DNA of 64,000 nucleotides, taken from the NCBI GenBank assembly GCA_965113315.1, contig OZ220365.1; one strand, 5' to 3'. The DNA comes from Podarcis vaucheri. Lineage: Eukaryota. A program made the position numbers and the translations under genes. Shown piece after piece: positions 1 to 18,350 of the stretch (within the stretch, counting starts at the first letter, position 1; each line of letters opens with the position of its first letter). The notes under the pieces are model-generated. The model did no database searches, was not told where the DNA came from, and was given only the letters and a program-made list of their open reading frames with translations.

Positions 1-595
1 GCATTTTGTATCTCATCTAGTTTGATCGTGTGTTGTCCCTATAAAGTAATGATGGATAATACATATATTAAATGCCACAACAAATACAATGGGTGTGTGG
101 CTAGCTCCAAAGCTAAATGGTGACATAATTTTATGTCTTTGAATATGATGGGGCAAAAATCTAATTGAAAGACAACCACAGGCTTTGGAATAGAATTTTT
201 TTTTACACACCAGGAATGGTAAAGATTCAAGGATTTTGAGGATCTAAATGCAAGGTATACGTCTGTTGGAAAATAGCTATTGTGATTTTGAGAGGTTGCC
301 TTAAATAGACATTGTTTCCATCCCAAACATGGGCCTGAAATTGGATTTGAATGTATCCTAATTATCATCCAGAGCCATCCAGAACACTCCCTCTCCTGTT
401 TCTTTAATCCACGGATGGGGAAGCTATGGTTGTCTAACTCCAATCAATTCTTAACATTGGGGCTGATAAGAGTTGGAGTCTCAAGAACATCGGGAAGGGC
501 CACAGATTCCTCATTTCTGCTTTAAGCTACTGTTGACCAATGCATGCAGCTGTTATACTGAATAAATTATTGAGATGCTTATTTACATGTGTTAT

Positions 596-601
596 TTTAT
601 T
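596..601 (-). terminator. Candidate poly(A) signal of ARMT1 copy A
   Basis: AATAAA about 390 nt after the stop; copy B has one at nearly the same distance. Confidence 0.55.
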
Positions 602-991
602 AGATTTTGTCCAAAGCAGCTATAAAAACGTCTGCTAAAGAACTGTAAATGTAACATACAACACAAGGCAAAGTGCTATACTGTAATAACTAAAACAGTA
701 TAAGAGGACAGATGCAGGCAAACCATTAAAACACGCACCTCTTGACCCTATCCAAAAATATTTTAAGAATAGAGGAAAGATAGCCTTTAAGATGGTTCTG
801 ATACTTTAAGAATAACAGGAAAGCGTTTGTAAACTTTCACAATTGCACACAACTTTAAAAAATATGAAGATCTGTAGAAGAAAATAAATAACATTAATAT
901 TGAACCCCAGTAAACCTTCCAATCTTAAACATCATAATCTTAAACATCATAAACAGTGTTCATGAACCGTGCAATGCTTTACACAAGCCAA

Positions 992-1753
992 TCATGAAGC
1001 AGCATCAAACTGAATTATTCCATATTTCCCAATGATCATCCATTCAGGTTCAGTTTTAGTAAGTTGTTCACCTTGCCCAGGTTTCAGCCCAACCTGGATA
1101 TCACATTTTAGCGTTCTTAAGCTACAGAGAGGGGCAGGGTGAAAATTGTTCAAGGCTTGATGGAACGGCACTGTGAATTCCCACTTCCGATCAGCTATCA
1201 ACTTTCTGTAGTTCAAATCACCTTTAAAAATAATTAAATTTGACTTCTGCAATTCACTGTACAAATCAGGAGCCACTTGAGCCATCCTACAATATTCATG
1301 TGGTGAGGTCCAGAACAAGTGATCATAAAAAATCCAAGCACCATTTTTCAAATAGCCCTCCCAGCAGACACCACACCTAGACATCCCCTTGTGATTAGCT
1401 GCCTGCATTTGCTTAATTGTCCAATTCAGGTCACGCCTTGTAGTATCTGAGACATACCATGGGATGCTTTTCCCATGGAAATGAATTTCAGTAGCTAATT
1501 TGGAGGATAACAAGAAGTCGGCCAGTATAAGGTCAGCAGTAAGTTCAAAACCAGCATTATCCAGGACTATGTCAAGTCTAGTAGTCTGCTTATTCATGTT
1601 CTTTTTGTTTATAAGCAGTGACCAAAGCATTTCCATGTGATCCACCAAGAGAAAAGGTTTTAACTCTTCCACAGACAGTAATGGGTCAGACTTCTGAGAA
1701 TTATCTGCCCCAGCTGACATTGACAGGTCACACTTATTACCCCACAGAGAAAC
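992..1753 (-). CDS. ARMT1: ARMT1 copy A exon 5 (catalytic core, ends in TGA)
   Basis: Acceptor ...ctttag|GTT; VSLWGNKCDLSMSAG...IIQFDAAS*. Confidence 0.95.
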   Translation of the reverse strand, partial: VSLWGNKCDLSMSAGADNSQKSDPLLSVEELKPFLLVDHMEMLWSLLINKKNMNKQTTRLDIVLDNAGFELTADLILADFLLSSKLATEIHFHGKSIPWYVSDTTRRDLNWTIKQMQAANHKGMSRCGVCWEGYLKNGAWIFYDHLFWTSPHEYCRMAQVAPDLYSELQKSNLIIFKGDLNYRKLIADRKWEFTVPFHQALNNFHPAPLCSLRTLKCDIQVGLKPGQGEQLTKTEPEWMIIGKYGIIQFDAAS

Positions 1754-4700
1754 CTAAAGAAGGAAAAAGTACACCTTAATCTGTAAGCCAAGTGATCCTT
1801 GCTCTACTATATACCAAGTGCATCTTCGAGGACTGCAGTTGAGGGACTACTGAGAGTTCTGCTTGTTGTAACAGGAGAAAGTAGGTCAGAATTGGAGTAT
1901 TTCTTTTTACTTCCATTGAAACCAATGTGAAAAGGCAGTGGGTTAATTCCCAAGAGGCAAGTATAATATTAATAAAATTTAATAAGAAATGTAAGAAAAA
2001 TGAGAATTAATCCACTTCTTTTGACCTTGAACAGGCTTAGGAAGTAGCAGTTTCTCTGCCAAGACACACTTACTGTTCTGTCAGGTTCCAATCCACTAAG
2101 CCAGGGAACCTCAGGCTCAGGGGGCCAATGTGACCCTCCAGTTCTCCTTCCTCCTTCTAATGTGTTATGTATGAAACACCTGTTAGTGAAAGAACATAAC
2201 TAAACCAATAAATTGGTTTTTATTGAATACTAACAAGTGATGTTGGGACGCAAACCACAGAGCCTAGGACTTGCTGATCAGAAGGTCGGTGGTTCGAATC
2301 CCCACAACGGGGTGAGCTCCCGTTGCTCAGTCCCTGCTCCTGCCAACTGCTCCAGCAGTTAGAAAGCACGTCAGAGTGCAAGTAGATGAATAGGTACCCC
2401 TCCGGCAGGAAAGTAAATGGCATTTCCATGTGCTGCTCTGGTTCGCTAGAAGCGGCATAGTCATGCTGGCCACATGACCCGGAAGCTGTACACCAATGCT
2501 CCCAATAAATCGAGATGAGCTGTACACCAATAAATCGAGATGAGTGCCGCAACCCCAGAGTCAGTCACGACTGGACCTAATGGTCAGGGGTCCCTTTATC
2601 TTTAACAAGTGATGTTACAGAAAAGTTGAGGCCAAAGTGTAATTAATATAGTTTCTGCTTATGCATTTAGCAGTTTTCTGCAGATGGGTTATATAATTAA
2701 TCTCTCAGTATAAAGCAGACTCCTGATTTAGCTAAGAAGGGATGGGGAACCTGTGGCCCTCCCAATGTTTGACTTCTAACTTCCATCATCCCCATCAAAC
2801 ATATGTGCCTTCCTGTAGCCCTATTTCATTTTGGAGAGGCCTTTAAATGTTGTAGAAACTTTCTGAACCTTCTCTCTCACAGTAAAAGCTGTAGCAATAT
2901 TTTTGGCAGCATGCCCTAATCAGGTTTTGGCAAAGGAGAGATCAATACCTATGAATTAATAGTTTGGCAAACTACAAAAACAAAAAGCAAGCTAACGATA
3001 ATAATTGATGTACTGTTTTCTGAAGAATCATCATAGGAAGGTATGTGTATGACTTGAGAATAAATGCCAGAAACTCTCCATAAAAATATTTTTGCCTTAG
3101 TTGTTAAATCCACTATGTGCATGGAACTGACTGGGGGTTCCATGTATTATTCCAGGTCATTTGTCATGCTTGTTTCTGGGTCTCAGTAGTAACTGAGGTT
3201 TATAGGACAGGAACTCACTTAAAATGATTCTGATGGCCTGAATAGTTTCTGAACATATTATCACTAATGGTTTCCATTAGGTCATATTTGAAACTAGATA
3301 TTTAAACTGGATTTTAACATTACAGAATATGTGCAACAGATAAATTATTTAAACAAAAAGTACTACCAATTTTACCTGTAGCAGCTTCAAAAATTCTTCC
3401 TTCAGGGATTTTTCATCTAGGCCCTTTATGTTTTTCAACAGCTCTTGTAGATAGGTGCTTAAAACAATAATAGCTTCCTGAGATTCAAAGAAACCATGAT
3501 CCTTTTCTTTTTTAAATACATCATAGTCACTGATGGGTGGACTAAACAGAAGGGATAGAAAAATAATAATGCATTAGTCTTTGACATCACTAAATGCCAA
3601 AAACTTTCTCCCATAGCCGTTGCAGTCTCTGCTGAGACTGTAGTATGTCATGTCTAGTATGGTGCTGTGGGATCAATGTAAGCTGATGGGGCCTGAAGAT
3701 GTGGACACAGTCATGGGTGTAGCGAGGATTTATGGGGGGGCAGAACCTCGGTTAGTTAAGTATTTTTATTGATTTACTTGCTCGGCGGGGGCAGTTCCCC
3801 CCCCACTACACCCACAGACACAGTGCTTGCAGCAATGTGTTCAAGCTCTCTTGACAGGATAGGTTCAGAATGTAGCTCACAGTTCTCTGTATAAGGGTCC
3901 CAGGTGTCCTCAAGGAGAGAGTAGTGTGGTCACTTCCTCTTTTTTTTTTAAAGAGATTTTCTTGTGTTACAAAACAAACAAATAAATGGGGAAAAGTACA
4001 TATAGCATCTCCATTTCTGATTTATAGAGCCTTTTTCACAGTTCATTTACATTGTGTATGAGACACTGTCATTCTAGAAATGCAGTTGGGGGGAAAGATA
4101 GGGGAGAGGTGGAACGATAACGTTACAGTGGATGCTCAGGTTGCGAACGTAATCCGTTCGGGATGCACATTCGCAACCCACAGCGGCGGATCTGCACATG
4201 CACGGGTTGTGATTCGGCGCTTCTGCGCATAGCACGATTTAGTGCTTCTGTGCATGCGCGACTGCTGAAACCCAGAGGTAACCCGTTCCAGTACTTCTGG
4301 GTTTCGGCAGTCCGTAACCCAAAAAAAAGCAACCTGAAGCATCTGTAACCCGAGGTATAACTAAAATAAAAAATTCCAGTAGCTACTGGAAGGAATTTTT
4401 TATTTTGACTATGGCAGACCAACACGGCTACCTATCTGTAACCGAGGTATAACTGTATTTTGTTCTATTGCATAGCATTTGTGTATGTTATCATGTCAGC
4501 ATCACATGGGTAGAGCTTTTATTTGTACATTTAATTTTTATTGGCATTGCGAGAGAGGGTCCAGAGCCTGGTTGGTTGCATTCAGTTGGTTTCAGGATGG
4601 TTTGTTTGTGAGTGTGAGGGTTGTTGGGTCAGGTTAGTCATATTTCATATGCTGCTTGTGGAGGGGATAGGTCGTTGTCTTGTGCTGTGTATGTGATAAA

Positions 4701-7700
4701 GGGGAACCACTGGGATGAAGGCGTCACTCTCCACTTGATAAGAGTTGTGTGCTGCTGATGGAAAGCCTGTTTAAAAACCTATCTTGGCTGACTATAGCCT
4801 ACCAGGCCAAATTCACAGTTTTACTGTTAGTATATAAAGACCTAAACAGCTTGGAATCAGCTGACATGAGGAACCACCTTTCCCCATATACCTGATATTT
4901 TAAGTTGGAGATGCAGCTAAGGGTTCCATGTTTGTGTTGCTTCTACAAGACAAAAGGCATTTAAGCATGATTGCACCTAGGTTGTGGAACTCCTTGCCTA
5001 TTACTATTAAGCAAGCACCATTGGTACTTTTCTGCTATATAACATAACTCAACTGTCCAGTGATATGCAGTTTGCTGCTGGCAAACTATCTTTGTGTTGT
5101 TTTATGGATGTGTTATGCTCGCCACTGCTTACTATCTGATATATAAACCTATGTACTTACTTCTGAGCGAGTGCCTCATGAATTCTACGATACATATAAC
5201 ACTCTGTATATAGCCAAGGAGACTGAAACCAGCTTGGTGGTCCATCTGATAATTTTTGATGATATTCTAAGCACTGGTTCCACAGAGTGGTGTCAGGGAG
5301 GCTATCATTCAAGGCAGTCAGTGGCTTGTCTGCCTGCAGCTCATCTCGTAACTTGGTCAGAAGGACTATAACTTTCTTCGCTGCTTCAATACCTTTCTAA
5401 AATAAAGTAGGAAATAAATATTTTCAATCAAATGTGTGTGTTGATAAAACTTACTTTTCCCCCACAAAAAACAAATCTTATTTGATAAATACAGTGCTTT
5501 AAGGACCAGAACAGCTATAAAAAGTGTAAATCCAGATGACATAGCTCTCAGAGCAGGGAACATAACAAACAACATAGTATTTGAATTAAGCTGAATGAGC
5601 ATTGGCATTGCTAACCTGTCTGTGATCCTGGATGTTAATCAAGTAAATGTGATTTAAGAGTTAGAAACAAATTTCTAAGACCAGGGCTGCCATCCCTGTG
5701 CTCATGGAGCATAGTGGTGCCTGAAAGACTTTAACTGGTGCCCCTAGACATGGTAAGTTATAATGGAAAATGTATAGATACACTTCTAAGCAATTTCTGT
5801 GAAATGAGCAAACCTGGCTGCTTCTACCTGTCAGGTGTTTTTAGCTGATGAGTGAAGTCAGAGCTGTGATTTGTGCACTAGGTAATAGGAATCCACAGGG
5901 TCTTAAAGAGACACTGCTTCTACCTCCCTAAATGTCCTTTTCCTGCTTCTGCCTCGTGTGCAAAACTTCAACAGATTAGGTATGCAGTCCTGGGAAGTTT
6001 CAGTGTTATTTTATCCTTAATTTTGTGTTATGCCATGGCCACTCCCATAGCAGTCATGTTGCTATATTACACCTCCCATGGTAGCCATTTTGTGACTGGA
6101 ACCCCCAGCATGGTCTCAAAGTTAAAAACTTAAGGCCAATGAAAATAACTGGCAGCAGATTCAGGACAAAAGAAAATGCTTGTTCACACAAAGCATATTT
6201 TATTGATATCACTGTGCACAATATGTGACTGCCAAAAGTTAAATGGCTTGAATGGGAATGGCAAATTCACGGGGCGGAAAAGTCTTATCACTATCTAATA
6301 GTAACAATGGCTACAGAGAACCTCCATGTTCAGAAGCAGCTATGCTACTGCAAGCCAGTTGATAGTGAAAGACAGTGGAAGATGCCTATTCCCTTCATTG
6401 TATCTAGTTTGCCACTGGAGAAGCATAATGCTGGATAAGACAGATCTCTAGTCTGATCTAGCATGGCTCTTCACATGCTCAAATGAAATCTGATGTTCTC
6501 TAGGCATTTGAAACAATTCTCAAAAGGTACGGGTAGACCTAAGATTTCCAATAAAATATCAAGAGAGAAAAGGTCAAATATACTGATTTCTTACTTCACC
6601 ATGTTCTTCAAAGAATTCATTTTTATGTTGCTCCAGATTATTGATAACTCTAGTCAGGATTACTGGCAGCTTGTCTTTAATTGTATTGTATGCAAAGGAT
6701 CTATGAAGAACAAAATATTATATCTATATAATATCTAAATGTATTTATATTGTAATGTATCCTTTTCTTAGGATTTAAATATTTTTAAAATCACAACTTT
6801 CTCCCTGTGTAGGACCCAAAGTGGCTCACAGCATAAATTAAAACGTACAACTAAAAACAGTTATAAAGAAACATTAAACTGCATAGATCGTATGCTTCAG
6901 AACACTGTAGCTCCAGGCTACAGTCCTAAATACACATCACAGTAGGGTTGGTTGGCCTGTTAAGAGCATTGTCGTATCATCCTCTTTTGGCTCCTGCCTT
7001 CTAACATAGCCAGCCTAGGGGGTGGACCTGGTTGTCAGTTTCATCTTCCTTAGCCTCAGTGCTTCCTTTGTGGAGTTTGGAAGTGAGGAGAATGGGTACA
7101 AAAGTAGGAATAGTTGGTCCCCCTTGTCATTAGCTTTACCTACTGTTGGCTACCCTACCAGTCATCAGGTCAGGATTAGAACTATTAGCATCCTAAACTG
7201 TTATTGGACACTTCCACATAGCAGTTTCTGGAGAATGAAAAAAACAAACCACTATTGGATTTTCCACAAATACCATAAATTCACGTTAAATAGGGAAATA
7301 CCATGGTACATTTTGATGTAGCTGTGAGGATTCAGGTAAGGAGCACAGAATCCACAGCACACTGCTGTATGGAAGAGCCCTTCATTTCCTTCATCCAACT
7401 GTCATTTCCCAACTGTCACTCCATGCTCCCTCCATCTCTTATATACGAAGTTGTTTTTATCATCTGTACAGTATTCTAATACGATTCGTTTTTCTATTCC
7501 CTTACACTTTAATTATTTTTTAAAGATCATTTTTGCAAGTTTTTAGCTTTCCATATTTCATCCGCCTTGTTGTCATTTGTGCAAGCCGCTTTCAAACCCG
7601 GTCTGGGGGTGTGGGGGGAATATACTAATAAAAGTCCTGTTGAACACAATGGAATTTATGCCATGAGAGAGAAAACGCTTACGATGCTCTTGCTAGTCAA

Positions 7701-7965
7701 GGAGCATGGAAAATTGATTTAAGATAAAATCTTATTAAAGCCTTGCGCGAAAAAGGAGACTTTGGACACCGGCCTTGTGCCCAAAGCAAAGGAGCTCAGG
7801 GTCTTGGTAAGAGCGGGAGGAAGACCCTGGAAGAGACCTGGACACAAGCTCCCTCTCCCAGCCCCATTTCGCACAGCCCCGACGAAGCAGCGGCGGCGGC
7901 GGGACGCACCCCTTGAACTTGCCCGCGAGCTGAGGCGGCAAAGTTGCCGCCACCGGCGTCGCCAT
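992..7965 (-). CDS. ARMT1: ARMT1/DCPH1 damage-control phosphatase (DUF89 subfamily III), distal tandem copy A; 5 exons, 441 aa
   Basis: join(7910-7965,6595-6700,5161-5396,3376-3541,992-1753) = 1326 nt, all GT-AG, in phase, no internal stop. Motifs SLWGNKCDLS, VLDNAGFEL, PWYVSD, FKGDLNYRKL and RTLK are present. Confidence 0.95.
2245..2602 (+). mobile_element. Sauria SINE (Squam1/POM-like) in ARMT1-A intron 4
   Basis: tRNA-like B box ggttcgaatcc, Sauria body, ctttatcttt tail; 14-bp TSD taacaagtgatgtt at 2231-2244 and 2603-2616. Confidence 0.88.
3376..3541 (-). CDS. ARMT1: ARMT1 copy A exon 4
   Basis: 166 nt, (N)PPISDYDVFKKEK...EEFLKLLQ, ag/gt flanks. Confidence 0.92.
3712..3816. mobile_element. 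Short hAT-type MITE
   Basis: Imperfect TIRs (catgggtgtag / ctacacccaca) and perfect 8-bp TSD gacacagt. Confidence 0.7.
4126..4455. mobile_element. Tc1/mariner (Tigger-like) MITE interrupted near its right end by a Penelope-like fragment
   Basis: TA|cagtgg...ggttgcgaa ... aaccgaggtataactg|TA; related to the element at 24719-24903. Confidence 0.7.
4785..5030 (+). mobile_element. Degraded L2-clade LINE 3' fragment
   Basis: Decayed WL..YQAKFTVLLLVYKDLNSL motif and a tgtggaactccttgcc (WNSLP) signature. Confidence 0.55.
5161..5396 (-). CDS. ARMT1: ARMT1 copy A exon 3
   Basis: 236 nt, KGIEAAKK...SPWLYTECYMYRRIHEALAQ, donor gtaagt. Confidence 0.93.
6150..6482 (+). mobile_element. Degraded CR1 LINE 3' end in ARMT1-A intron 2
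   Basis: ggcagcagattcaggaca...ttgttcacacaa...ctagcatggctctt; an equivalent copy sits in ARMT1-B intron 2. Confidence 0.6.
6595..6700 (-). CDS. ARMT1: ARMT1 copy A exon 2
   Basis: 106 nt, SFAYNTIKDKLPVILTRVINNLEQHKNEFFEEHGE, donor gtaag. Confidence 0.92.
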
Positions 7966-8400
7966 TTTGCTCACTGCGGCGCCTTCCCGGCACGCCACCC
8001 GGCGCAGCTAGGCGCTTTCCCAAGCAACGCCTGTTCTCATTGGTCCGCGGCTGCGTTCCCTCGCGCAGCGGCCTTAGAAAGGGAGCAGAGCGAAGCAGCT
8101 CCTTCGGTAAGGAGGCAGAGAAGAGGGGCGGGGGGCGGGGTTGATGTAGAGGAGCGGAGGAGCCTCCTCCTCCCCCCGCTCTCGGGAAAAGGAAAAAAGG
8201 GCACTGGTCTCGTTCTGAGTGGCTATTCGAGATGCGCGCGCATTCCCCTGTGAGACTATCTTCTGTCCTCTTCCGCCCTCACTAGGACCGGGCACAGCTG
8301 GCTTGCGCCTCGGATCCTTGGCGCTGAGTAGCTGCGGAGCGAAGAGACGCGAAGTGGGCGGGCGGGGAGAGGGAGCTATTCTTAAAAAGTAAGCTGCAGA
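7750..8400. promoter_or_regulatory. CpG-island promoter of ARMT1 copy A
   Basis: CpG-dense stretch over exon 1; YY1-like CGCCATTTT at the ATG, CCAAT (attgg near 8039), GC boxes, NRF1-like TGCGCGCGCA near 8233. Confidence 0.75.
7910..7965 (-). CDS. ARMT1: ARMT1 copy A exon 1 (coding part)
   Basis: aaaATGG Kozak context, MATPVAATLPPQLAGKFK(G), donor GG|gtgcgt; phase 2 matches exon 2; lies in a CpG island. Confidence 0.85.
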
Positions 8401-9495
8401 AGGTAGTTAGGATTCTTGTGTATATTCTATAACCGCAGACTTACAAAACGGGGCACGCAAGGGAGAAGGGACTGGGAGGGAGGAGGAAAAAATTAAACTC
8501 AGGCACCAGTTCTTAGAACAGTTGTTCTTATAATGACCAGCTGGCACAGTTGATGGGTAGGAGGTGCCTGATAGAGCTGGGCTTTCAGCAAAGCTGATGA
8601 TGGAAGGAGCCTTCTGCCTCCCAGATTGCCCACTGAGTTTGGTGGAATGGCTACACTAAGGAGACAGTTGAGGGAGAGGATGGAGCTGGTCACAGCAGAG
8701 CCAAAGGAGCGAGACACCTCTAAATTTTATATACAGGCAGCTACATTTTTGTGCACCTCCAATTGATGCATGACCCCCAGCACACATGTTGTTTTTGGCC
8801 CTGGAACGGGCTTAAGGGACAGGGAGTTGCTTGTCATTCATGTCTCAGTTGAGATTATCCCATGTTGTCAGTATCCCTGAACAAGAGTCTGGGCTCTGCA
8901 GTAGACTCAAAGCTTAAGATCAATCTAGGCAAGACAAACTTGGAGTAAGAGGGACAGACTATACAGATGAGGAAATACTGGTCCTGGGTGCATATTCTTC
9001 TTTAAAGGTGAAGGAAGACCCTTGGACCTGGGATTGTTATTGAAGAACCAGGTGACAATATTAGCTAATTCTTAATAATTACAGGAATACAAAATAGATC
9101 TTGCCACTGTCTCAGTGGCAGGGAGGTACAGAGGTGTACCTTAGGTGTTTGTGTAATTTGGTATTGTATGCACCCTAATGGGACTCCAACTAAAGAAAGT
9201 ACTGCCAGCACCACAATTTTAGCATCAATGTGGGTGTACTAGAGGGAATGTTGAAAATCCATTTTGATTCTACACTTAAAAGATAAAGCTGCTTGACTAT
9301 CCTTGCACCATGACTCTGAGGAGGTCTGTTAATAGATGCTGGTGTTGGAAAAACAAGAGCTTATTGGGATTGTGGGACTGTTTCAACAACTGAAAGTACA
9401 ATTGAAAAGCCAGAATATATCTAGAATTATGTAAGATGACTGCACCTGAATACCTTGTTGTATCATAAACCCATCTACGCAATAGTACTAGATGA

Positions 9496-9755
9496 CTGTA
9501 TTTTTCGCTCTATAAGATGCACCAGACGACAAGACGCACCTAATTTTTGGAGGAGGAAAACAAGAAAAAAAAATATTCTGAATCTCAGAAGCCAGAACAG
9601 CAAGAGGGATCGCTGCACAGTGAAAGCAGCAATCCCTCTTGCTGTTCTGGCTTCTGGGATAGCTGCACAGCCTGCATTCGCTCCATAAGATGCACACACA
9701 TTTCCCCTTACTTTTTAGGAGGGAAAAAGTGAGTCTTATAGAGCAAAAAATACGG
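9496..9755. mobile_element. Mariner-type MITE with an internal hairpin, between the two ARMT1 copies
   Basis: TIRs ctgtatttttcgctctataaga / tcttatagagcaaaaaatacgg, TA on the right side; internal inverted repeat at about 9583-9660. Confidence 0.8.
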
Positions 9756-9844
9756 TAATTTATAATAACTACCACCAACTGATGCAGATACCGCTTATAC
9801 TGGAGAAAGAATTCAAGCCTATCCATTGAATACATTTGAATCCA

Positions 9845-9850
9845 TTTATT
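9845..9850 (-). terminator. Candidate poly(A) signal of ARMT1 copy B
   Basis: AATAAA about 395 nt after the stop. Confidence 0.55.
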
Positions 9851-10243
9851 TATTTAAGCTAATCTTGACCAGAGAAGTTCAGGCAGCTTTAAAGTAAGAC
9901 TTGAGCTACAGAAAAGCAAAAACGTTTAGCAAATCAAAGTGCAATATTTTGTCATTAATGTTAGAATAGAGGTCAGACAAACTGCAGCTACTAAAGCTGC
10001 TCTCACTCAGTGTTTCCTCTGTCAAGCATTCTTTACTTACAAATATCTAAGAATAATGAGGTTTTCATTTTTTAAGACCATGAATACCAGAAAAGGGTTT
10101 GTAAAATGTCACAATTGCACACCACCTTAAAAATAGCAGTAAGACCCGTAGAAGAGAACATGCATATTGAAAGCCAGCGGTCTTTCAACCTTGACCAACA
10201 AAAGCATTTAGCACAGCATTGTCCTTTAAACTTTGCACATCAA

Positions 10244-11005
10244 TCATGAAGCAGCATCAAACTGAATTATTCCATATTTCCCAATGATCATCCATTCAGG
10301 TTCAGTTTTAGTAAGCTGTTCACCTTGCCCAGGTTTCAGCCCAACCTGGATATCACATTTTAGCGTTCTTAAGCTACAGAGAGGGGCAGGGTGAAAATTG
10401 TTCAAGGCTTGATGGAACGGCACTGTGAATTCCCACTTCCGATCAGCTATCAACTTTCTGTAGTTCAAATCACCTTTAAAAATAATTAAATTTGACTTCT
10501 GCAATTCACTGTACAAATCAGGAGCCACTTGAGCCATCCTACAATATTCATGTGGTGAGGTCCAGAACAAGTGATCATGATAAATCCAAGCGCCATTTTT
10601 CAAATAGCCCTCCCAGCAGACACCACACCTAGACATCCCCTTGTGATTAGCTGCCTGCATCTGCTTAATTGTCCAATTCAGGTCACGCCTCGTAGTATCT
10701 GACACATACCATGGGATGCTTTTCCCATGGAAATGAATTTCAGTAGCTAATTTGGAGGATAACAAGAAGTCAGCCAGTATAAGGTCAGCAGTAAGTTCAA
10801 AACCAGCATTATCCAGGATTATATCAAGTCTGGTAGTCTGCTTATTCATGTTCTTTTTGTTTATAATCAGTGACCAAAGCTTTTCCATGTGATCCACCAA
10901 GATAAAAGGTTTTAACTCTTCCACAGACTGTAATGGGTCAGACTTCTGAGAACTATCTGCACCGGCTGACAGTGAAAGGTCACACTTATTTCCCCACAGT
11001 GAAAC
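10244..11005 (-). CDS. ARMT1: ARMT1 copy B exon 5
   Basis: 762 nt, VSLWGNKCDLSLSAG...QFDAAS*. Confidence 0.95.
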   Translation of the reverse strand, partial: VSLWGNKCDLSLSAGADSSQKSDPLQSVEELKPFILVDHMEKLWSLIINKKNMNKQTTRLDIILDNAGFELTADLILADFLLSSKLATEIHFHGKSIPWYVSDTTRRDLNWTIKQMQAANHKGMSRCGVCWEGYLKNGAWIYHDHLFWTSPHEYCRMAQVAPDLYSELQKSNLIIFKGDLNYRKLIADRKWEFTVPFHQALNNFHPAPLCSLRTLKCDIQVGLKPGQGEQLTKTEPEWMIIGKYGIIQFDAAS

Positions 11006-14000
11006 CTAAAAGAAGAAGAAAAAGTACACAATCCCTGTGAGCTGAGTAATGCCTTGTTGCACTATCTATCACATATATTTAGATTCAGATTTAACGGCAT
11101 ACTTAAAAAAGCTGGATTCCCAGTAGTCAGCTGTTTAGCAGAGAAGAGCGTCTCCTTACTTCTGAACAACTAATTGAGGGGATTCAATCTTATTTTAAAA
11201 ATATCAACTACCTTTGTTGGATTAAGCTGGGGAACCATGCACACAACACCCATTTACACAAGCTATTGCCTAGCAAGATAGGGTTAAGGATAGGGATATG
11301 GACACTGAAGCCTCCTTTCAAGTACATATATCCCTTATTTAGAGCAGGATGCTGATTTATTGGGAGAGGGGATAATTTTATTATTTATTCAATTTATATT
11401 CTGCCATTCCCCAACCCAGGGCAGCAAATCATCTTGTGAATTGCGGAGCACAGCTAACTCCCAGGTTTCTAAATTCAAAAGCAAAAACTACATCCATCAT
11501 ACTTTAGTCGCAAGTTTAGGTGATGTTTATTAGTTTTCAACAAATGAGCATCACATCAGTAACTTTGTAAGGACAGGTTCCAATGAGGAATAAGTGACAA
11601 CAGATTATAAGTGAGAGAGAAAAAACAGAAGGAATGTAAATGCTATTTTGTGAAAGATAATCAGGGGAAGCCATGGGTATAGCAGAAAATAAATTTCTGA
11701 GAAATTAACATCTCAAAAACATCTATTTCAGAGCTGTGAAATAATTATGTGCATGAAAAAGAATTATGTGCTCGTTTCTGTGCCCCAATATTAGAAGTGC
11801 AGCCAATGATATAAGAATTTTACTCACCGTTTAAAACAACATTGCAGAGAACAGTATATGAGTTGTTGAAGGATCTTAACTTTCTTAAAATTATTCTGCT
11901 GGCATGGAATAACTTTTCAACATTTCTTATCAGAAATGTGATACATCTCATGTTTTACATTAGGCCATCTTTGAAACAAGAAACTTAAAAATTAGAAAAT
12001 ATGTGCAACATTAAATAAACAGTAAGTATTACTAGTTTTACCTGAAGCAATTTTAAAAATTCCTTTTCCAATAAATTTTCATCTAGTTTCTCCACGTTTT
12101 TCAATATTTCTTGCAGATAAGTACTCATTAGAATTATAGCTTGTTGAGATTCAAAGAAATTGTGTATCTTTTCTTCTTTAAACACATCAAAGTCACTGAT
12201 GAGTGGACTAAACAGGAAAGGTGGAAAACATAAATTAGTTTTTGACCTTAATAAATACTGAAGACCACATCCACATGTTGAGCTCCCTGCCCCGCCAATT
12301 GCTTACCCTGTGACATGGTGCTATGTTGTATACTTCTACACCCCAGCTCAAAGTCATGGGCCTCATTCACAAAATGCTAAGCCAAACCACTGCTTAATAT
12401 ACATAAACAAGTATACTTGTACAAAACTAGGGCACTTCACTCCTTCTTGGGTCCTGCTGTTGCTCCGCTATTGGGAGCTAAGCCATGGTTTGGCTTAGTG
12501 TTACCTGTGAATCTCGGCTTGTGGTTTGTCTCACTCCAAACCTTAGTTATACAGCTCATTGTCTGTCTAGAGAAAAACAAGCTAGGAGCACATTTGCACA
12601 GAACCCTAAGCCAAACCATGTGCTAGCTCTTGGTAGTGTAGCAGCAGCGGGAGGAGTGAACTACCTGTGATTTCCTAACCGCACTAGCACATTTGCTTAT
12701 TTATGTTAAGCCACGTTTTGGCTTAGGGTTATGTGTGAATCAGGACACATAATGTAACATGTAACACTCAGCCAAACCATGGCTTAGCTCCCAATAGTGT
12801 AGCTACAAAGAACAACAGGAAGTTCCATCCTTAGTCAAACAGGTTTCATTTTACTATGTAAATGTTAGAAAGGTGTTTGAGAACAAATACAAAAGTTCTC
12901 AGATTCTCCCTGCCCCTGCTCATCATACTTGTAGCATTCATCATAAATACACCAATCCATCCCACCACTATTCTGTTTCCTTGGCCAAGAGCCGAAAGCA
13001 GGAATGTTTAATCTGCAGTACATATTTACCAAATAAGATACATGCAACAAATATATAAAATCAGAAGCTGCCTTCTGCATTGGTCCAATGTAGTTCAGTA
13101 CTGTCTACACTGACTGGCAGCAGCTCTTCAGGGTTTTCATACAGAACATTCCCATTCCTACATGGAAATGCCAGAGATTGAAACTGGGAGCTTATGCTTG
13201 ATAAGCAGATACTCTATTACTGAGCTGCAGTTGTTCCCTATTACCCAACTCTGACCAGTGGTTTGGATGTGGTACACAAATGCATGAGAAGGAAACAATA
13301 GCTTGAGTTATAAATATACCAGGAATATTTCATATTTTTTTCCTCCCTTATTAACACACATGGCTCCTGTCTAATAAAAATGACAGAAGTACAGAAATCA
13401 AATATCTGAAGTTGTTCAATATAAAATGTTTTTTGTTATTTAAAATAATTAATTCATAAGCAAAGCACACATTTCTTGACATTTTAATGAGCTTATACGA
13501 CCTTTTATAGAGAAATAATTCCAAGCAATAATATATAACAAATAAACATTGTAATTATGAAACACAGAATGGTTTCAAAATTGAAACGAACTTTACATTT
13601 TTTTCTTCCCAAGAAACAAGGTATTCCTTCATCCTTCCAGGAACAGGAGAAAATAATGTTAACAATTTTTTCCTCATCATTTCAATGTCATCTGATAGGA
13701 CTCCACATGCAATCTGTACTCCAGATTTGGGTAACTACTATATCCTGAGGCACTGTATAAGCTGTGAAAGTGGGTTATAAGTTACGTAAATTAATATAAT
13801 TATTATTAACACATTAACTTTACAGTATTTTTCAACTGATTTTTTTATTTTATTTGATGGCTGTTTTTCTATGGATGGGGGTTCAAAAAAAAGTAGCCAA
13901 CAGTTTTCGTTTCATTCAATTAAGCTGTAGGCTAAAGTGAACAAATCACTTTACAGGTCTATCATTAATCAGAAAGCAAAGGAAAAAGAGAATTACAAAG

Positions 14001-17000
14001 ACTTCAAAATTTGTAGCAAGAAGTGACACTAAAATTCCAACTTGTAGTTATACTATACCTACTAAATTAGGTTTTGAGGTGGATTAGAAAATATTAAAAA
14101 TGCATGAAATAGACAAGAGTCACTAGGAAGGAACAAAGTTCACCTTCCCCAGTCTTCAGATGTTCCACTGGCACTCTGCTGTTGATCTGTGTACCGCATA
14201 GCAGGTTTCAGAGGAAATAACCGAAGCCCAGAAATGGCTGTTGGAGTCCTTCACAGGATGGTGTCTATTTACCCAAACTGCTGCTATGTTGCTCTGGCTC
14301 TTGGTGCCAGATGCAAGAGGCAACTATCACTCTGTTGCTGACTAGAAGTCAGGAGAAGGAATAAAAAAAGGAAAACAGCTGGCACTTAAGATTGAGTTAT
14401 TTTCTCTGTTTTACCTTAAGCTTGAACTTTATTACCCAGTTCCCCATCCCACAGACAGAAACGATACAACAGCAAACAACACACATGCTTACTTTTGAGC
14501 GAGTGCCTCATGAATTCTACGATACATATAACACTCTGTATATAGCCAAGGAGACTGAAACCAGCTTGGTGGTTCATCTGATAAACTTTGATGATATTCT
14601 AAGCACTGGTTCCAGAGAGTGCTGTCAGGGAGGTTATCAGTCAAGGCAATCAGTGGTTTGTCTGTCTGCAGCTCATTCCGTAACCTGGAGAGATAGGCTA
14701 TAGCTTTCTTCTCAGATTCAATACCTTTCTAAAATTAAGAGAAAATGAAGAGATAAACAAATGTTTTCAATCTGAATGTGTTTTGTTCATAAAGTTATGT
14801 TCTTCAATAAATTGTAGAGTTGCAATAACTTGACTGAATTCCAATCAAAAGCGAAAGTCCAGAACCCAAGTGTCAAACATGATAACCAAATGCTTTAGTC
14901 CATAGGTAGGCAACTTGTAGCCTCAGGGTGACTGAGACGTTACAGGTTTATAAAATTATACATGGCATGGGAAAAGTGGACAGAGAATTCTAGAACTTGG
15001 GGTTATCTGTTTAAACAGATGGCAGCAGATTCAGGACAGAAAAGTACTTGGTCACACAAGGAATAATTTATGTAATTCACTGCCAAGAGATGTGATGAGG
15101 GCCACTAGCTGAAAAGGCTTAAATGGAAAATTGAGACAAATACATGGGCCACTAAGGATACTGGCTTTTTAGTTTGTGCTAGCAAGGCTCTTTGTATGTT
15201 CTTATGGAAGCAGAAAAATATTTCCTTAAGCATGCAGAAATAATTACACAAAGTTTGATTTGCTTAAGGTTTTTAAGAGAACAGCATTGAAAGAGAAAGA
15301 ATAAAAGGCAGCAATTTCTTACTTCTCCATGTTCTTCAAAGAATTCATTTCTGTGTCGATGCAGAGTATCAATAACTTTAGTCAGGATTAGAGGCAGCCT
15401 ATCTTTAATTGTATTGTATGCGAAGGATCTATGAAGAACAAAACAATATTGTTTTAGGCTTGTAAATAGCCACTTACATCACCATCAGAATCACCATCAG
15501 GCAACTTTATTAAAGTTAATTTCTACACAGAAGGAGTAAACTGCTGTGTTCAGATATCATGGTAACCCATAATTATGTTGGCTCACAAAGTGAGTCTCAC
15601 CTCCTCCCAAGCTTGCATACTCCTTCCCTCCCTGTTGTAGATAAGACAAGCTTGGAAAGTTTTACTTCCATTTTCAATAAACCAATGCTCATCTTCTTGC
15701 TTGAACTTGACGAACTGGTTAAACTTTGTTTGAAACATGACATATTTAAGATTAACCACAATTTACGGTTGTAAAAAACTGAAATTAAAAGTGAAAGCTT
15801 CCCATCACCGCCTTGTGGCTCTGGAGGAGAAAGAGCAGAGGGAAGGAGCCCAGGTCTATTATTCTTATACACAATAAATTATGGTTTATCATTATGTCTA
15901 AACACAGCCTTTTTCTAAACCTCTCATACCCCTCCACACCACATCTCAATGCAAACACAGTATTTATCACACTGAAACATTGAAGCCATTAAGATTTTGC
16001 CCAACTGATATGCAGTCCTAAGCAATACACTGATTCCATATATGAAAATTAAGCAGAAATATTACTTCCAAGTGTCCAGACTTGCAGGGGGGAAGTTTTG
16101 TGGTCTTAATCTCACACAGTTTACCATGGAAAATAAAGGATGGATTATTGCAGTTACACTTCATCTTCATATGTTCACAGCAACTTCCTTAAACAATGTC
16201 CCAGACCAATAAGAACTTGGTCAAATAAGCTAAATATTCTAATTCATATCTAAAGGATGGTATTTATGACTCTGGGTAACACTTTTAATAATCCTTATCT
16301 TAAAACCAAAATGTCAGTCTTCAGACATTCATTTAATTTGTTGGAAGCCGCCTAGAGTAGCTGGGGTTACCCAGTCAGATGGGCACCATATTATTATTAT
16401 TATTTCTTTACTATTAACAAATAAACAACTTAGTTCTCTTCAAAAAAAGAGGAGGGGGAGACAATGCCTTGTTTCTGATGTCAGTACATCTGAATTATTG
16501 TCTAGAATAGTAAGAAAATGTATGATTTGTTAATCAATGGCAATTCAAGTATTATTGCTGGGTTTCACAGTAGATAAACATATTTTCAAAACTGGTTTTC
16601 ATAGAATTGTACAGTTGGAAGGGACCACAAGGATCATCTTGACACCCCCCTCCAAGCCCTTGCACTGCCTTCCCAAATCAAAGTAAGGAGGCGCTTAGCT
16701 TTGGGAAGGAGGCATGAGGGCTCTGACAGGGTCCTAGAGCTCTCACGCCTCATTCCCAAAGCCTAGTTAGCACTTCCAAGCTTTGAGGAGGCAGCAGGGC
16801 TCTAGGACCCTGCCAGAAGGTTATGGTGTGTGTCAAATTTTGGCCTCACTAACCCCCCCCCAGCGCCCCACCTCCCATGACAAGCAGCATGCAGCCCATA
16901 GGTTCTGTGTCAAATAAAACTGCATGGTTAAAATAAAATGTAATACGCGAGAATACAAATATATTGATTAAATAGTCCTCTGTCAAAGACATTGCTCAAA

Positions 17001-17689
17001 TCATGATTTGGACATCTCAAACTTAGCTTCACATGCGCTCTGTTCCTCTGACTTAACTTCCTGGTTTTGCCTCAAGCCTGAATGGGAAACTCACTTCTAA
17101 TTCCGGCTCAGAAACATGTATGGTTTATGCTTTGTTGCGACGTAATAGAAAACTTGGTTTTGCAAACCACCGAGTGATTTGCAGGAGGAGCAGGGAAGAC
17201 GTGAATACTTGCAGCACGAGGGTTGGAGCGGACCCAACCACCCACTGACAGCCGAAAAAGGCCACTGTGTTCCTGGCTTCTATTGCGAAACCTCCCTTTC
17301 CCAAACAGAAGCGGTTCAAAGTGCGGGGAACAGACACCCTTCTGAGACCGCAAATGCCACACTCGCAAATAATTCGCGGAGGCAGCTCCGAATCTGGAAG
17401 CCGGCTTTCCGTGCAAAGCGAACTGGAGCTCGGAGGAAGAGCAGAAATGGAAAACAGCGGCTCACTGGAGTGCCGCGTTTTCAGCCGCCCCGGCTCCCCG
17501 AGCGAGGAGGGGAAGAGACCCGGACCCTTGTCCCCTGGTACTCTACAGCTCCAGCCTCCCCGCGAATGGCCGACGGTTCACCCCTCGCCCACCCGTTTCT
17601 CAGAGCCCCCGACGAAGCGGCGGAGACGGGACGCACCCCTTGAACTTGCCCGCGAGCTGAGGCGGCAGCGTTGCCGTCGGCGCCGCCAT
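10244..17689 (-). CDS. ARMT1: ARMT1/DCPH1, proximal tandem copy B (head-to-head with RMND1, probably the ancestral position); 5 exons, 440 aa
   Basis: join(17637-17689,15323-15428,14493-14728,12042-12207,10244-11005) = 1323 nt. Exons 2-5 have the same sizes and phases as copy A. An in-frame upstream ATG at 17698 would add MSK. Confidence 0.95.
12042..12207 (-). CDS. ARMT1: ARMT1 copy B exon 4
   Basis: 166 nt, (N)PLISDFDVFKEEK...KEFLKLLQ. Confidence 0.92.
12355..12810. repeat. Cluster of inverted MITE-like units (aagccaaaccatg / catggtttggctt), possibly Harbinger-like
   Basis: Motif repeated in alternating orientation; 12468-12509 is the near-perfect reverse complement of about 12757-12797. 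Confidence 0.6.
13062..13238 (-). mobile_element. Old tRNA-derived SINE with a CR1-like tail
   Basis: Reverse complement reads gggaacaactgcagctcagtaatagag...ccagtttcaatctctggcatttcc (A/B-box-like head). Confidence 0.55.
14493..14728 (-). CDS. ARMT1: ARMT1 copy B exon 3
   Basis: 236 nt, KGIESEKKAIAYLSRLRNELQTDKP...ECYMYRRIHEALAQ. Confidence 0.93.
14935..15205 (+). mobile_element. Degraded CR1 LINE 3' end in ARMT1-B intron 2
   Basis: gcagcagattcaggacaga...cacacaa...cactgccaagagatgtgatga...ctagcaaggctctt. Confidence 0.6.
15323..15428 (-). CDS. ARMT1: ARMT1 copy B exon 2
   Basis: 106 nt, SFAYNTIKDRLPLILTKVIDTLHRHRNEFFEEHGE. Confidence 0.93.
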
Positions 17690-18350
17690 TTTGCTCATCG
17701 TAGCGCCGCCCGGCGCAGCTGCGCGCTTTCCCAAGCAACGCCTGATCCCATTGGTCGGCGGCTGAGCTCCCTCGCTCAACGGGCTTAGGGAGGAGGGGCG
17801 CTGAAGCAAACCAGCCCCTTCGGTAAAGGAGGGCGGGCGGAGGGATACATAGCCAAACGAAACGCGAGGCCTTGCGGGTAATCGCCTCCTCAGGGGGAGG
17901 CGGCGACCTTCATCGGCGCTCTTGGGCGGGGAATATGACGTCGCGCGTCAACCGCACAGACGGAGGGGGCGGGGCTGACTCTGTGGCTCCGCCGGCCCTC
18001 CGTGGAGAGAGCGGGTCCTCCTCCCACCTTGTGCTTCGGCGCCAGGTTGGTAAAAGGCTCCTGCGCGTGGAACTGGGTCTCCCTCTGATTGGATGGTGTT
18101 TGGGGCGCGCGCATGGGGCAGAGTGCGAGCGGAGGGGGGGGGTCATTCCTCCCGCACCCGCTTAAAACGCCCTAATCGGATACTGTGATGGCCACCTGCG
18201 GCGCTCGCAATATGGTTCCCAGCGGAGTCCTTCCCCGCAACCTTCCGGTCTTGTTAGTGGGAGGAATGGAGGCGCTCTGGCATGAATGCGGGAAGCGGTG
18301 TGGGTTTCACCCTTAATTTCACCTGTCACCTGGGCGCTGTAAGGGAGGGT
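17200..18350. promoter_or_regulatory. Bidirectional CpG-island promoter for ARMT1 copy B and RMND1
   Basis: CpG-dense with head-to-head genes; CCAAT boxes (near 17751 and 18088), CRE-like TGACGTCG 17936-17943, GC boxes; candidate RMND1 exon-1 donor cag|gttggt at 18046. Confidence 0.8.
17637..17689 (-). CDS. ARMT1: ARMT1 copy B exon 1 (coding part)
   Basis: MAAPTATLPPQLAGKFK(G), donor GG|gtgcgt. Confidence 0.85.

Follow-up and report, generated by a model that had tools for sequence, protein, structure and literature searches.

An Old Tandem ARMT1 Gene Pair in Podarcis vaucheri in Which Gene Conversion Very Probably Homogenises the Catalytic-Core Exon

Introduction

Conversion confined to the coding parts of tandem duplicates is classically known from the primate gamma-globin genes HBG1/HBG2, the red/green opsin exons, and RHD/RHCE. 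Here, we describe a tandem pair of ARMT1 genes in positions 1–18000 of a 64,000-nucleotide stretch of DNA from the lizard Podarcis vaucheri (contig OZ220365.1 of assembly GCA_965113315.1; this whole stretch is called the window below). Judged from sequence comparison, interlocus gene conversion very probably homogenises exon 5 of this old paralog pair. Like the classical cases, the pair combines old paralogs with mosaic divergence, homogenised synonymous sites, and diverged introns and flanks; the copies group by species inside the tract and by paralog outside it, and the tracts are polymorphic among individuals. Unlike the classical cases, the border in ARMT1 runs within one enzyme, separating a lid/helical module from the catalytic core, and it is present in two lineages. 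The mechanism itself is ordinary, textbook concerted evolution. We found no relevant literature on ARMT1 gene conversion or on ARMT1 in Podarcis, and the ARMT1 pair of Lacertidae and the amphisbaenian Rhineura, as well as its long-lived module border, appear to be undescribed in the literature that we searched.

The closest described proteins are human ARMT1 (C6orf211; PDB 6UMQ/6UMR) and yeast YMR027W (3PT1), which are damage-control phosphatases of DUF89 subfamily III. The members of this subfamily are approximately 380–480 amino acids long, and roles have been assigned to a metal Asp-Asn pair, a further Asp, and a lid Asp: the Asp-Asn pair and the further Asp bind the metal, and a three-helix lid with a conserved Asp (Asp195 in the human protein) closes over the metal site (PMC9062747). 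Schizosaccharomyces pombe likewise has two DUF89 paralogs in its genome, Duf89 and Duf8901, which differ in their activity levels; they are described as differing over their whole length, and no shared converted core is reported for them (PMC9062747).

Divergence Between the Two Copies by Exon

The window contains a tandem duplication with units of ∼7.5 kb spaced 9.25 kb apart. Both units are intact genes in the same orientation, encoded on the minus strand, and each has five exons separated by canonical GT-AG introns. The exon borders of both copies were placed at canonical AG/GT sites, and those of copy A are backed by spliced contigs of the putative RNA run X15 with the joints 1753/3376, 3541/5161, and 5396/6595 (given as the two positions joined); the last of these joints recurs at low depth in a second putative RNA run, X17. 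Summed over the exons, the open frames comprise 441 codons in copy A and 443 codons in copy B. The exons are as follows.

992–1753, minus strand: exon 5 of copy A (the downstream, “ARMT1-like” gene), with a PF01937 match, the motifs, and joint 1753/3376 in run X15
3376–3541, minus strand: exon 4 of copy A, 166 nt, with splice sites and joints 1753/3376 and 3541/5161
5161–5396, minus strand: exon 3 of copy A, 236 nt, with splice sites and joints 3541/5161 and 5396/6595
6595–6700, minus strand: exon 2 of copy A, 106 nt, with splice sites and a contig joint
7910–7965, minus strand: coding part of exon 1 of copy A; the upstream ATG of copy B reads GTG here
10244–11005, minus strand: exon 5 of copy B (the upstream, ancestral-type ARMT1 gene), with a PF01937 match and the motifs
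12042–12207, minus strand: exon 4 of copy B, with canonical splice sites
14493–14728, minus strand: exon 3 of copy B, with canonical splice sites
15323–15428, minus strand: exon 2 of copy B, with canonical splice sites
17637–17698, minus strand: coding part of exon 1 of copy B, start MSKMAAP...

Exon 5 of copy A, whose stop codon occupies 992–994, encodes the lid and the alpha/beta catalytic core.

The two copies differ at 15 of 106 nucleotides in exon 2, 23 of 236 in exon 3, 41 of 166 in exon 4, and 22 of 762 in exon 5. Exon 4 is the most diverged exon; of its 55 codons, 16 carry amino-acid changes and 13 others purely synonymous changes. The last 335 nt of exon 5 (992–1326 versus 10244–10578) contain one difference, a synonymous one at 1064. 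A sequence-only reading of this DNA had proposed exon-restricted gene conversion, and its counts for exons 2, 4, and 5 and for the single synonymous 3′ difference were all reproduced exactly. Within exon 5, the differences follow a gradient: eight sites in the first 77 nt (10.4%), 13 in the next 350 nt (3.7%), and one in the last 335 nt (0.3%). The synonymous divergence (dS, Nei-Gojobori) was 1.20 in exon 4 and 0.33 in exon 2. In exon 3, it was 0.20 in the 5′ part and 0.05 in the 3′ part, and in exon 5, it was 0.147 and 0.015, respectively. At third codon positions, 1 of 112 differs in the 3′ part of exon 5 versus 35 of 168 in exons 2–4 (Fisher p = 7e-8). The longest identical run between the copies had a permutation p of 0.0002, and the best single breakpoint within exon 5 was 1326 (p = 8e-5).

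At the 3′ side, the identity stops 3 nt beyond the stop codon, at 988/10240, and from there on the 3′ untranslated regions (UTRs) are ∼60–70% alignable with indels. In the introns, blastn searches (including those at word size 7) gave matches beside the exons and nothing further, and both intron 4 and the 3′UTR are diverged right up to the homogenised stretch. The patchy alignment of introns and 3′UTRs that had been described earlier is thus borne out. Two other elements of the proposal held in part. The near-identity does end abruptly at the stop codon as described, but at the splice acceptor it does not, because there it decays inside the exon. The term “exon-restricted” holds only approximately: the first 26 codons of exon 5 are paralog-specific and a weaker patch occurs in exon 3. 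The regions that we distinguish, the conversion tracts among them being candidates, are listed below.

760–988, minus strand: 3′UTR of copy A, diverged from that of copy B (10030–10240) except for an island at 810–861
989–1326, minus strand: youngest putative conversion tract, copy A, differing from copy B at 1 of 338 nt
10241–10578, minus strand: copy B partner of the youngest tract
1327–1676, minus strand: older or partly re-diverged homogenised part, with 13 differences in 350 nt
1677–1753, minus strand: start of exon 5, coding for the lid around the CDLS Asp and apparently escaping conversion, with 8 of 77 nt differing
5164–5241, minus strand (partner 14496–14573): identity patch in exon 3, 78 nt

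The differences in exon 3 are also unevenly placed, with 19 in the 5′ 120 nt and 4 in the 3′ 114 nt. In the patch at its 3′ end, PPSWFQSPWLYTECYMYRRIHEALA, copies A and B are the same throughout, synonymous sites included; this patch may mark another short conversion event or may reflect strong constraint. The Rhineura paralogs also have several exon 3 residues in common. In the otherwise diverged 3′UTRs, the island at 810–861, possibly a conserved regulatory element of ARMT1 3′UTRs, is 52 nt long and 87% identical to 10082–10133.

These values bear on the idea of a recent duplication, in which positive selection would have rapidly diverged exons 2–4 only, and exon 5 would show the true young age of the pair. 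The ratio of nonsynonymous to synonymous divergence (dN/dS) of exon 3 is fairly high (0.74) and exon 2 of copy A carries many derived residues, as this idea would predict. However, dS itself is high (∼1.2 in exon 4 and 0.33 in exon 2), the introns and UTRs are unalignable, and the paralogs are already distinct in Rhineura. We therefore regard a recent duplication as scarcely credible.

Trees by Exon

The window genes were analysed exon by exon, and the full-length trees were built from database proteins only. In the tree of exons 1–4 of the database proteins, the A-type proteins formed a clade that included Rhineura A (100/99), and the lacertid B-type proteins formed another (99/98). When both Rhineura proteins were forced together, 33 log-likelihood (lnL) units were lost (approximately unbiased [AU] test, p = 0.02), and when all lacertid proteins were forced together, 41 units were lost (AU p = 0.0035). 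Single-exon trees of exons 2 and 4, with the window copies included, agree with this grouping by paralog. The exon 5 tree, in contrast, placed the lacertid A and B copies in one clade (99/98) and Rhineura A with Rhineura B (93/85), and the monophyly of paralog A was rejected (delta lnL 80, AU p = 1.7e-60). The interlocus conversion proposed from the sequence alone is upheld by these trees, since exon 5 groups by lineage, exons 1–4 group by paralog, and the opposite topologies are rejected.

The same conflict can be followed in individual residues. About 20 residues of exon 5 are common to both paralogs within Lacertidae or within Rhineura and separate one lineage from the other. In Zootoca, both proteins carry I129/S130. 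At residue 118, the window and P. muralis have Ala in A as well as in B, and P. raffonei, P. lilfordi, and Zootoca have Ser in A as well as in B; the B-type protein of Lacerta agilis also has Ser. The residues that differ consistently between lacertid A and B proteins number 8 of 35 in exon 2, 10 of 78 in exon 3, 12 of 55 in exon 4, and 3 of 253 in exon 5, and the three in exon 5 are at positions 12, 18, and 26, i.e., within its first 26 residues.

Independent Sequencing Runs

Four runs were examined, all as Logan contigs: X4 (an independent individual carrying the species label of the window), X3 (a second species), and the two putative RNA runs X15 and X17. In X4, one 688-nt contig spans 989–1676 at a depth of 34.4. 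At its 3′UTR end, it overlaps a contig of the copy A 3′UTR (depth 15.4) by 30 nt, and a second contig (depth 20.1), best read as the copy B UTR, jumps from 989 to the UTR island at 861. At its other end, it overlaps a contig of copy A intron 4 (depth 17.3). Because the depths sum (15.4 + 20.1 versus 34.4), both copies of this individual pass through one identical exon 5 sequence over 989–1676. The same collapse was found in X15 over 1009–1650 (depth 111 versus 67.6 + 37.4), and the depth in X3 is also compatible with it. In the collapsed samples, the copies are identical over about 640–710 nt, which is longer than in the window, and the collapsed contigs break at 1677 (X4), 1701 (X3), and 1651 (X15), which are paralog-specific sites of the window. 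Since the extent of the tract differs among samples of the same label and among related species, conversion is, as far as these comparisons indicate, recent, polymorphic, and ongoing.

An artefact of assembly or polishing, in which short-read polishing or collapse made the exon 5 copies look alike, had been named in advance as one of the findings that would overturn the claim. Reads of a few hundred bases are indeed not uniquely placeable in a 338-nt near-identical stretch, and the evidence given here comes from other individuals. However, X4 and X15 have single exon 5 contigs at the summed depth of the A and B UTRs, so that in these independent read-derived contigs the copies are no less similar than in the assembly, and even more alike than in the window; in addition, the annotated proteins of five other assemblies repeat the pattern. 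An artefact is thus exceedingly improbable.

The contig of X4 carries the letter of copy B at 10 of the 14 sites in 989–1676 at which the window copies differ. Compared with copy A of the window, X4 differs at 14 of 688 positions in exon 5, at 1 of 402 in exons 3 and 4, and at ∼1.2% in the introns. Of the 14 differences in exon 5, 10 are the A/B sites with the B letter and three are at 1301, 1304, and 1402, where copies A and B of the window agree with each other and X4 reads the other state. All four runs differ from the window at 1301 and 1304, which are synonymous CpG transitions, and X4 and X3 differ from it at 1402, in the Ala/Ser118 codon. The earlier argument that purifying selection does not freeze synonymous sites is sustained, as sites in the tract differ between samples and co-vary between the paralogs.

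These sites are also relevant to an explanation by constraint only, according to which the copies would stay alike with no exchange because selection acts on the protein and also on its synonymous sites, through splicing enhancers, RNA structure, or some overlapping element. The core is 60–80% identical across vertebrates at the protein level, and a near-identity that stops at the stop codon would also be expected from coding constraint. Nevertheless, all four runs have other letters than the window at 1301 and 1304, where the two window copies are equal, and the paralogs have about 20 lineage-specific exon 5 residues in common, with paralog monophyly rejected at p = 1.7e-60. On this evidence, constraint as the sole explanation is very unlikely.

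The positions of the tract ends further allow conversion to be compared with unequal crossing-over, with segmental replacement through loss of a copy and later re-duplication of the 3′ part, and with a variant in which repair was templated by RNA or complementary DNA (cDNA). Tandem paralogs in the same orientation and 9.25 kb apart can misalign, and an RNA template might be suspected from a border that sharply follows a coding landmark. A crossover, however, would bring one flank along, and here both flanks are diverged up to the tract (intron 4 and the first 77 nt of exon 5 on one side, the 3′UTR on the other). A cDNA template would take in the 3′UTR and end at the splice site, not within the exon. 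Moreover, the tract ends vary among the samples (1651, 1677, and 1701), as repeated short tracts predict. Together, these alternatives have a slim chance of accounting for the data, and interlocus conversion remains the reading that we prefer.

In the same contig data, two parts of copy A, 2150–2750 in intron 4 and 4150–4550 in intron 3, have summed contig depths of hundreds of thousands to millions. They are very abundant interspersed repeats and the source of many loose contig ends and joints.

Age and Distribution of the Duplication

In the nearest 90%-identity clusters, A-type and B-type proteins are both present in Podarcis muralis, P. raffonei, P. lilfordi, and Zootoca vivipara; in the same two clusters, Lacerta agilis has the B-type only. 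Both types are also present in the amphisbaenian Rhineura floridana. When the N-terminal 190 residues of an A-type protein were used as the query, no other squamate was found to have the A-type N-terminus, and the remaining squamates in our searches have one ARMT1 type each. Because both types occur in lacertids and in Rhineura, the protein distribution places the duplication before the Lacertidae–Rhineura split, which squamate time trees date to well over 100 million years ago. Unlike the squamates with a single type, this lizard has two ARMT1 types with paralog-specific N-terminal helices and lid.

The ancestral and derived states of the exons form a mosaic. Copy A is derived in exon 2; in exon 4, copy B has derived residues in common with the teiid Salvator, and copy A resembles the skink, gecko, and snake. 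Because of the resemblance of copy B exon 4 to the derived residues of Salvator, the duplication may predate the split from teiids, or the history of exon 4 may differ from that of the other exons. Proteins annotated as “ARMT1-like” also occur in marsupials (Dromiciops, Monodelphis, Phascolarctos, Trichosurus, and others), and extra ARMT1 copies may not be unique to lacertids.

The 5′ ends of the two copies were also compared. Copy B retains the upstream start codon of many squamates (MSKMAAP...), which reads GTG in copy A (7966–7974 versus 17690–17698), and copy A therefore starts three codons downstream of the start of copy B. The promoter/5′UTR blocks at 7851–8115 and 17582–17832 are 78% identical, and both contain a CCAAT box.

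Protein Family and Structure

Exon 5 matches the PF01937 profile with E = 1.2e-66 in copy A and E = 2e-68 in copy B, and both matches span profile positions 109–311 of 311. WGNKCDLS, LDNAGFE, VSDTT, GDLNYR, and RTLK are present in both copies; the DN, D, GDLNYR, and RTxK residues that had been assigned to exon 5 were thus located in each of them. With a C-terminal GDLNYR and RTxK and lengths of 441 and 443 amino acids, both copies have the characters of DUF89 subfamily III. The database proteins closest to copy A exon 5 are Podarcis ARMT1 and ARMT1-like, at 98% and 96% identity. By these characters, the window pair is assigned to the ARMT1 genes of DUF89 subfamily III, and its products are predicted to be metal-dependent damage-control phosphatases. 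Over almost all of its length, the Podarcis copy-B protein P0002 matches 6UMQ (E = 5e-203), and the lid Asp (CDLS), LDN, VSD, GDLNYR, and RTxK of ARMT1 are kept in both window copies.

In an AlphaFold2 (AF2) model of the A-type protein of P. raffonei, residues 1–192 (exons 1–4) form seven helices, residues 194–207 are disordered, and the alpha/beta core follows; the mean pLDDT (predicted local distance difference test) of this model is 76.5, a moderate value, and its C-terminal 60 residues are poor. Alignment to 6UMQ equates Asp195 with the Asp of the CDLS motif, which the start of exon 5 encodes. Because Asp195 maps to this position, the part that escapes conversion would correspond to the N-terminal helices plus the lid, and the homogenised part to the core with LDN, VSD, GDLNYR, and RTLK. 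The “constant core, variable cap” arrangement that had been suggested for the pair fits the positions of the motifs, the AF2 model, and the published lid structure, and the A and B proteins may differ in their substrate or partner range.

Transcripts of the Locus

In run X17, a 2348-nt contig at a depth of 98 matches exon 5 with 22 other letters, and it does not extend into the copy A UTR or into most of copy A exon 4. We read it as a B-type mRNA.

A different kind of transcript is represented by 749-amino-acid isoforms annotated as “CCDC170-like” (P0142–P0144; Lacerta agilis, Podarcis muralis, and P. raffonei), which open with copy B exons 1–4. The starts of these isoforms are 93–100% identical to the copy B exons of the window (12042–17698), and the isoforms continue into a coiled-coil region unmatched anywhere in the window. 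Copy B exon 5 and the whole of copy A are therefore skipped. The phase-0 junction between exons 4 and 5 thus serves as a module border in read-through transcripts.

Discussion

The features by which conversion is commonly recognised occur together at this locus: the likeness of the paralogs within a lineage is restricted to the tract, it is clustered and includes synonymous sites, lineage variants are present in both copies, and the flanks are not exchanged. We propose that a duplication before the Lacertidae–Rhineura split would have yielded two tandem ARMT1 genes, and that short non-reciprocal exchanges would later have overwritten, repeatedly, the core-coding (alpha/beta) part of exon 5. 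The tracts would stop where homology stops, which on the 3′ side is the diverged 3′UTR 3 nt past the stop codon and on the 5′ side the already diverged first ∼80 nt of exon 5, i.e., the lid. Exons 1–4, with their seven helices, and the lid would in this way keep their paralog identity, the core would evolve in concert, and selection against conversion of the lid may strengthen the 5′ border. The molecular mechanism is presumably heteroduplex repair, with the borders set by the limit of homology, by selection, or by both.

Several points weigh against this reading. We infer the non-reciprocal transfer from its outcome and did not observe it. The runs are contigs from samples other than the source individual, not raw reads, and 13 of the 14 differences of X4 in exon 5 are identified by site. 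CpG transitions recur more readily than other changes, which applies to 1301 and 1304. Apart from the Logan contigs, the cross-species tests were made at the protein level, and the exon 5 protein tree does not resolve the relationships within Lacertidae. Finally, M42 and F142, present in some copy A genes, could be late changes of copy A rather than conversions, or they may be old A alleles erased elsewhere by conversion.

A bolder interpretation is that selection, and not only the loss of homology, holds the border, so that one core has been shared by two specificity modules (the N-terminal helices and the lid) for >100 million years, independently in Lacertidae and Rhineura. We consider this doubtful at present. 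If it were true, the two genes would be a natural domain-swap pair with a broader substrate or partner range. The identity of the core may also be kept for interchangeability, e.g., because of a shared partner or of mixed transcripts across the tandem locus.

The locus very probably represents a clean and datable case of domain-limited concerted evolution, in which the pair predates the lacertid–amphisbaenian split and the core alone is still homogenised. In practice, exon 5 is unusable for the orthology or dating of these genes, and short reads are mis-placed there. The physiological substrates of ARMT1 and the DUF89 proteins are still unsettled. The A and B proteins, with their near-identical core and different N-terminal helices and lid, offer a comparison that would reveal which module sets the specificity.

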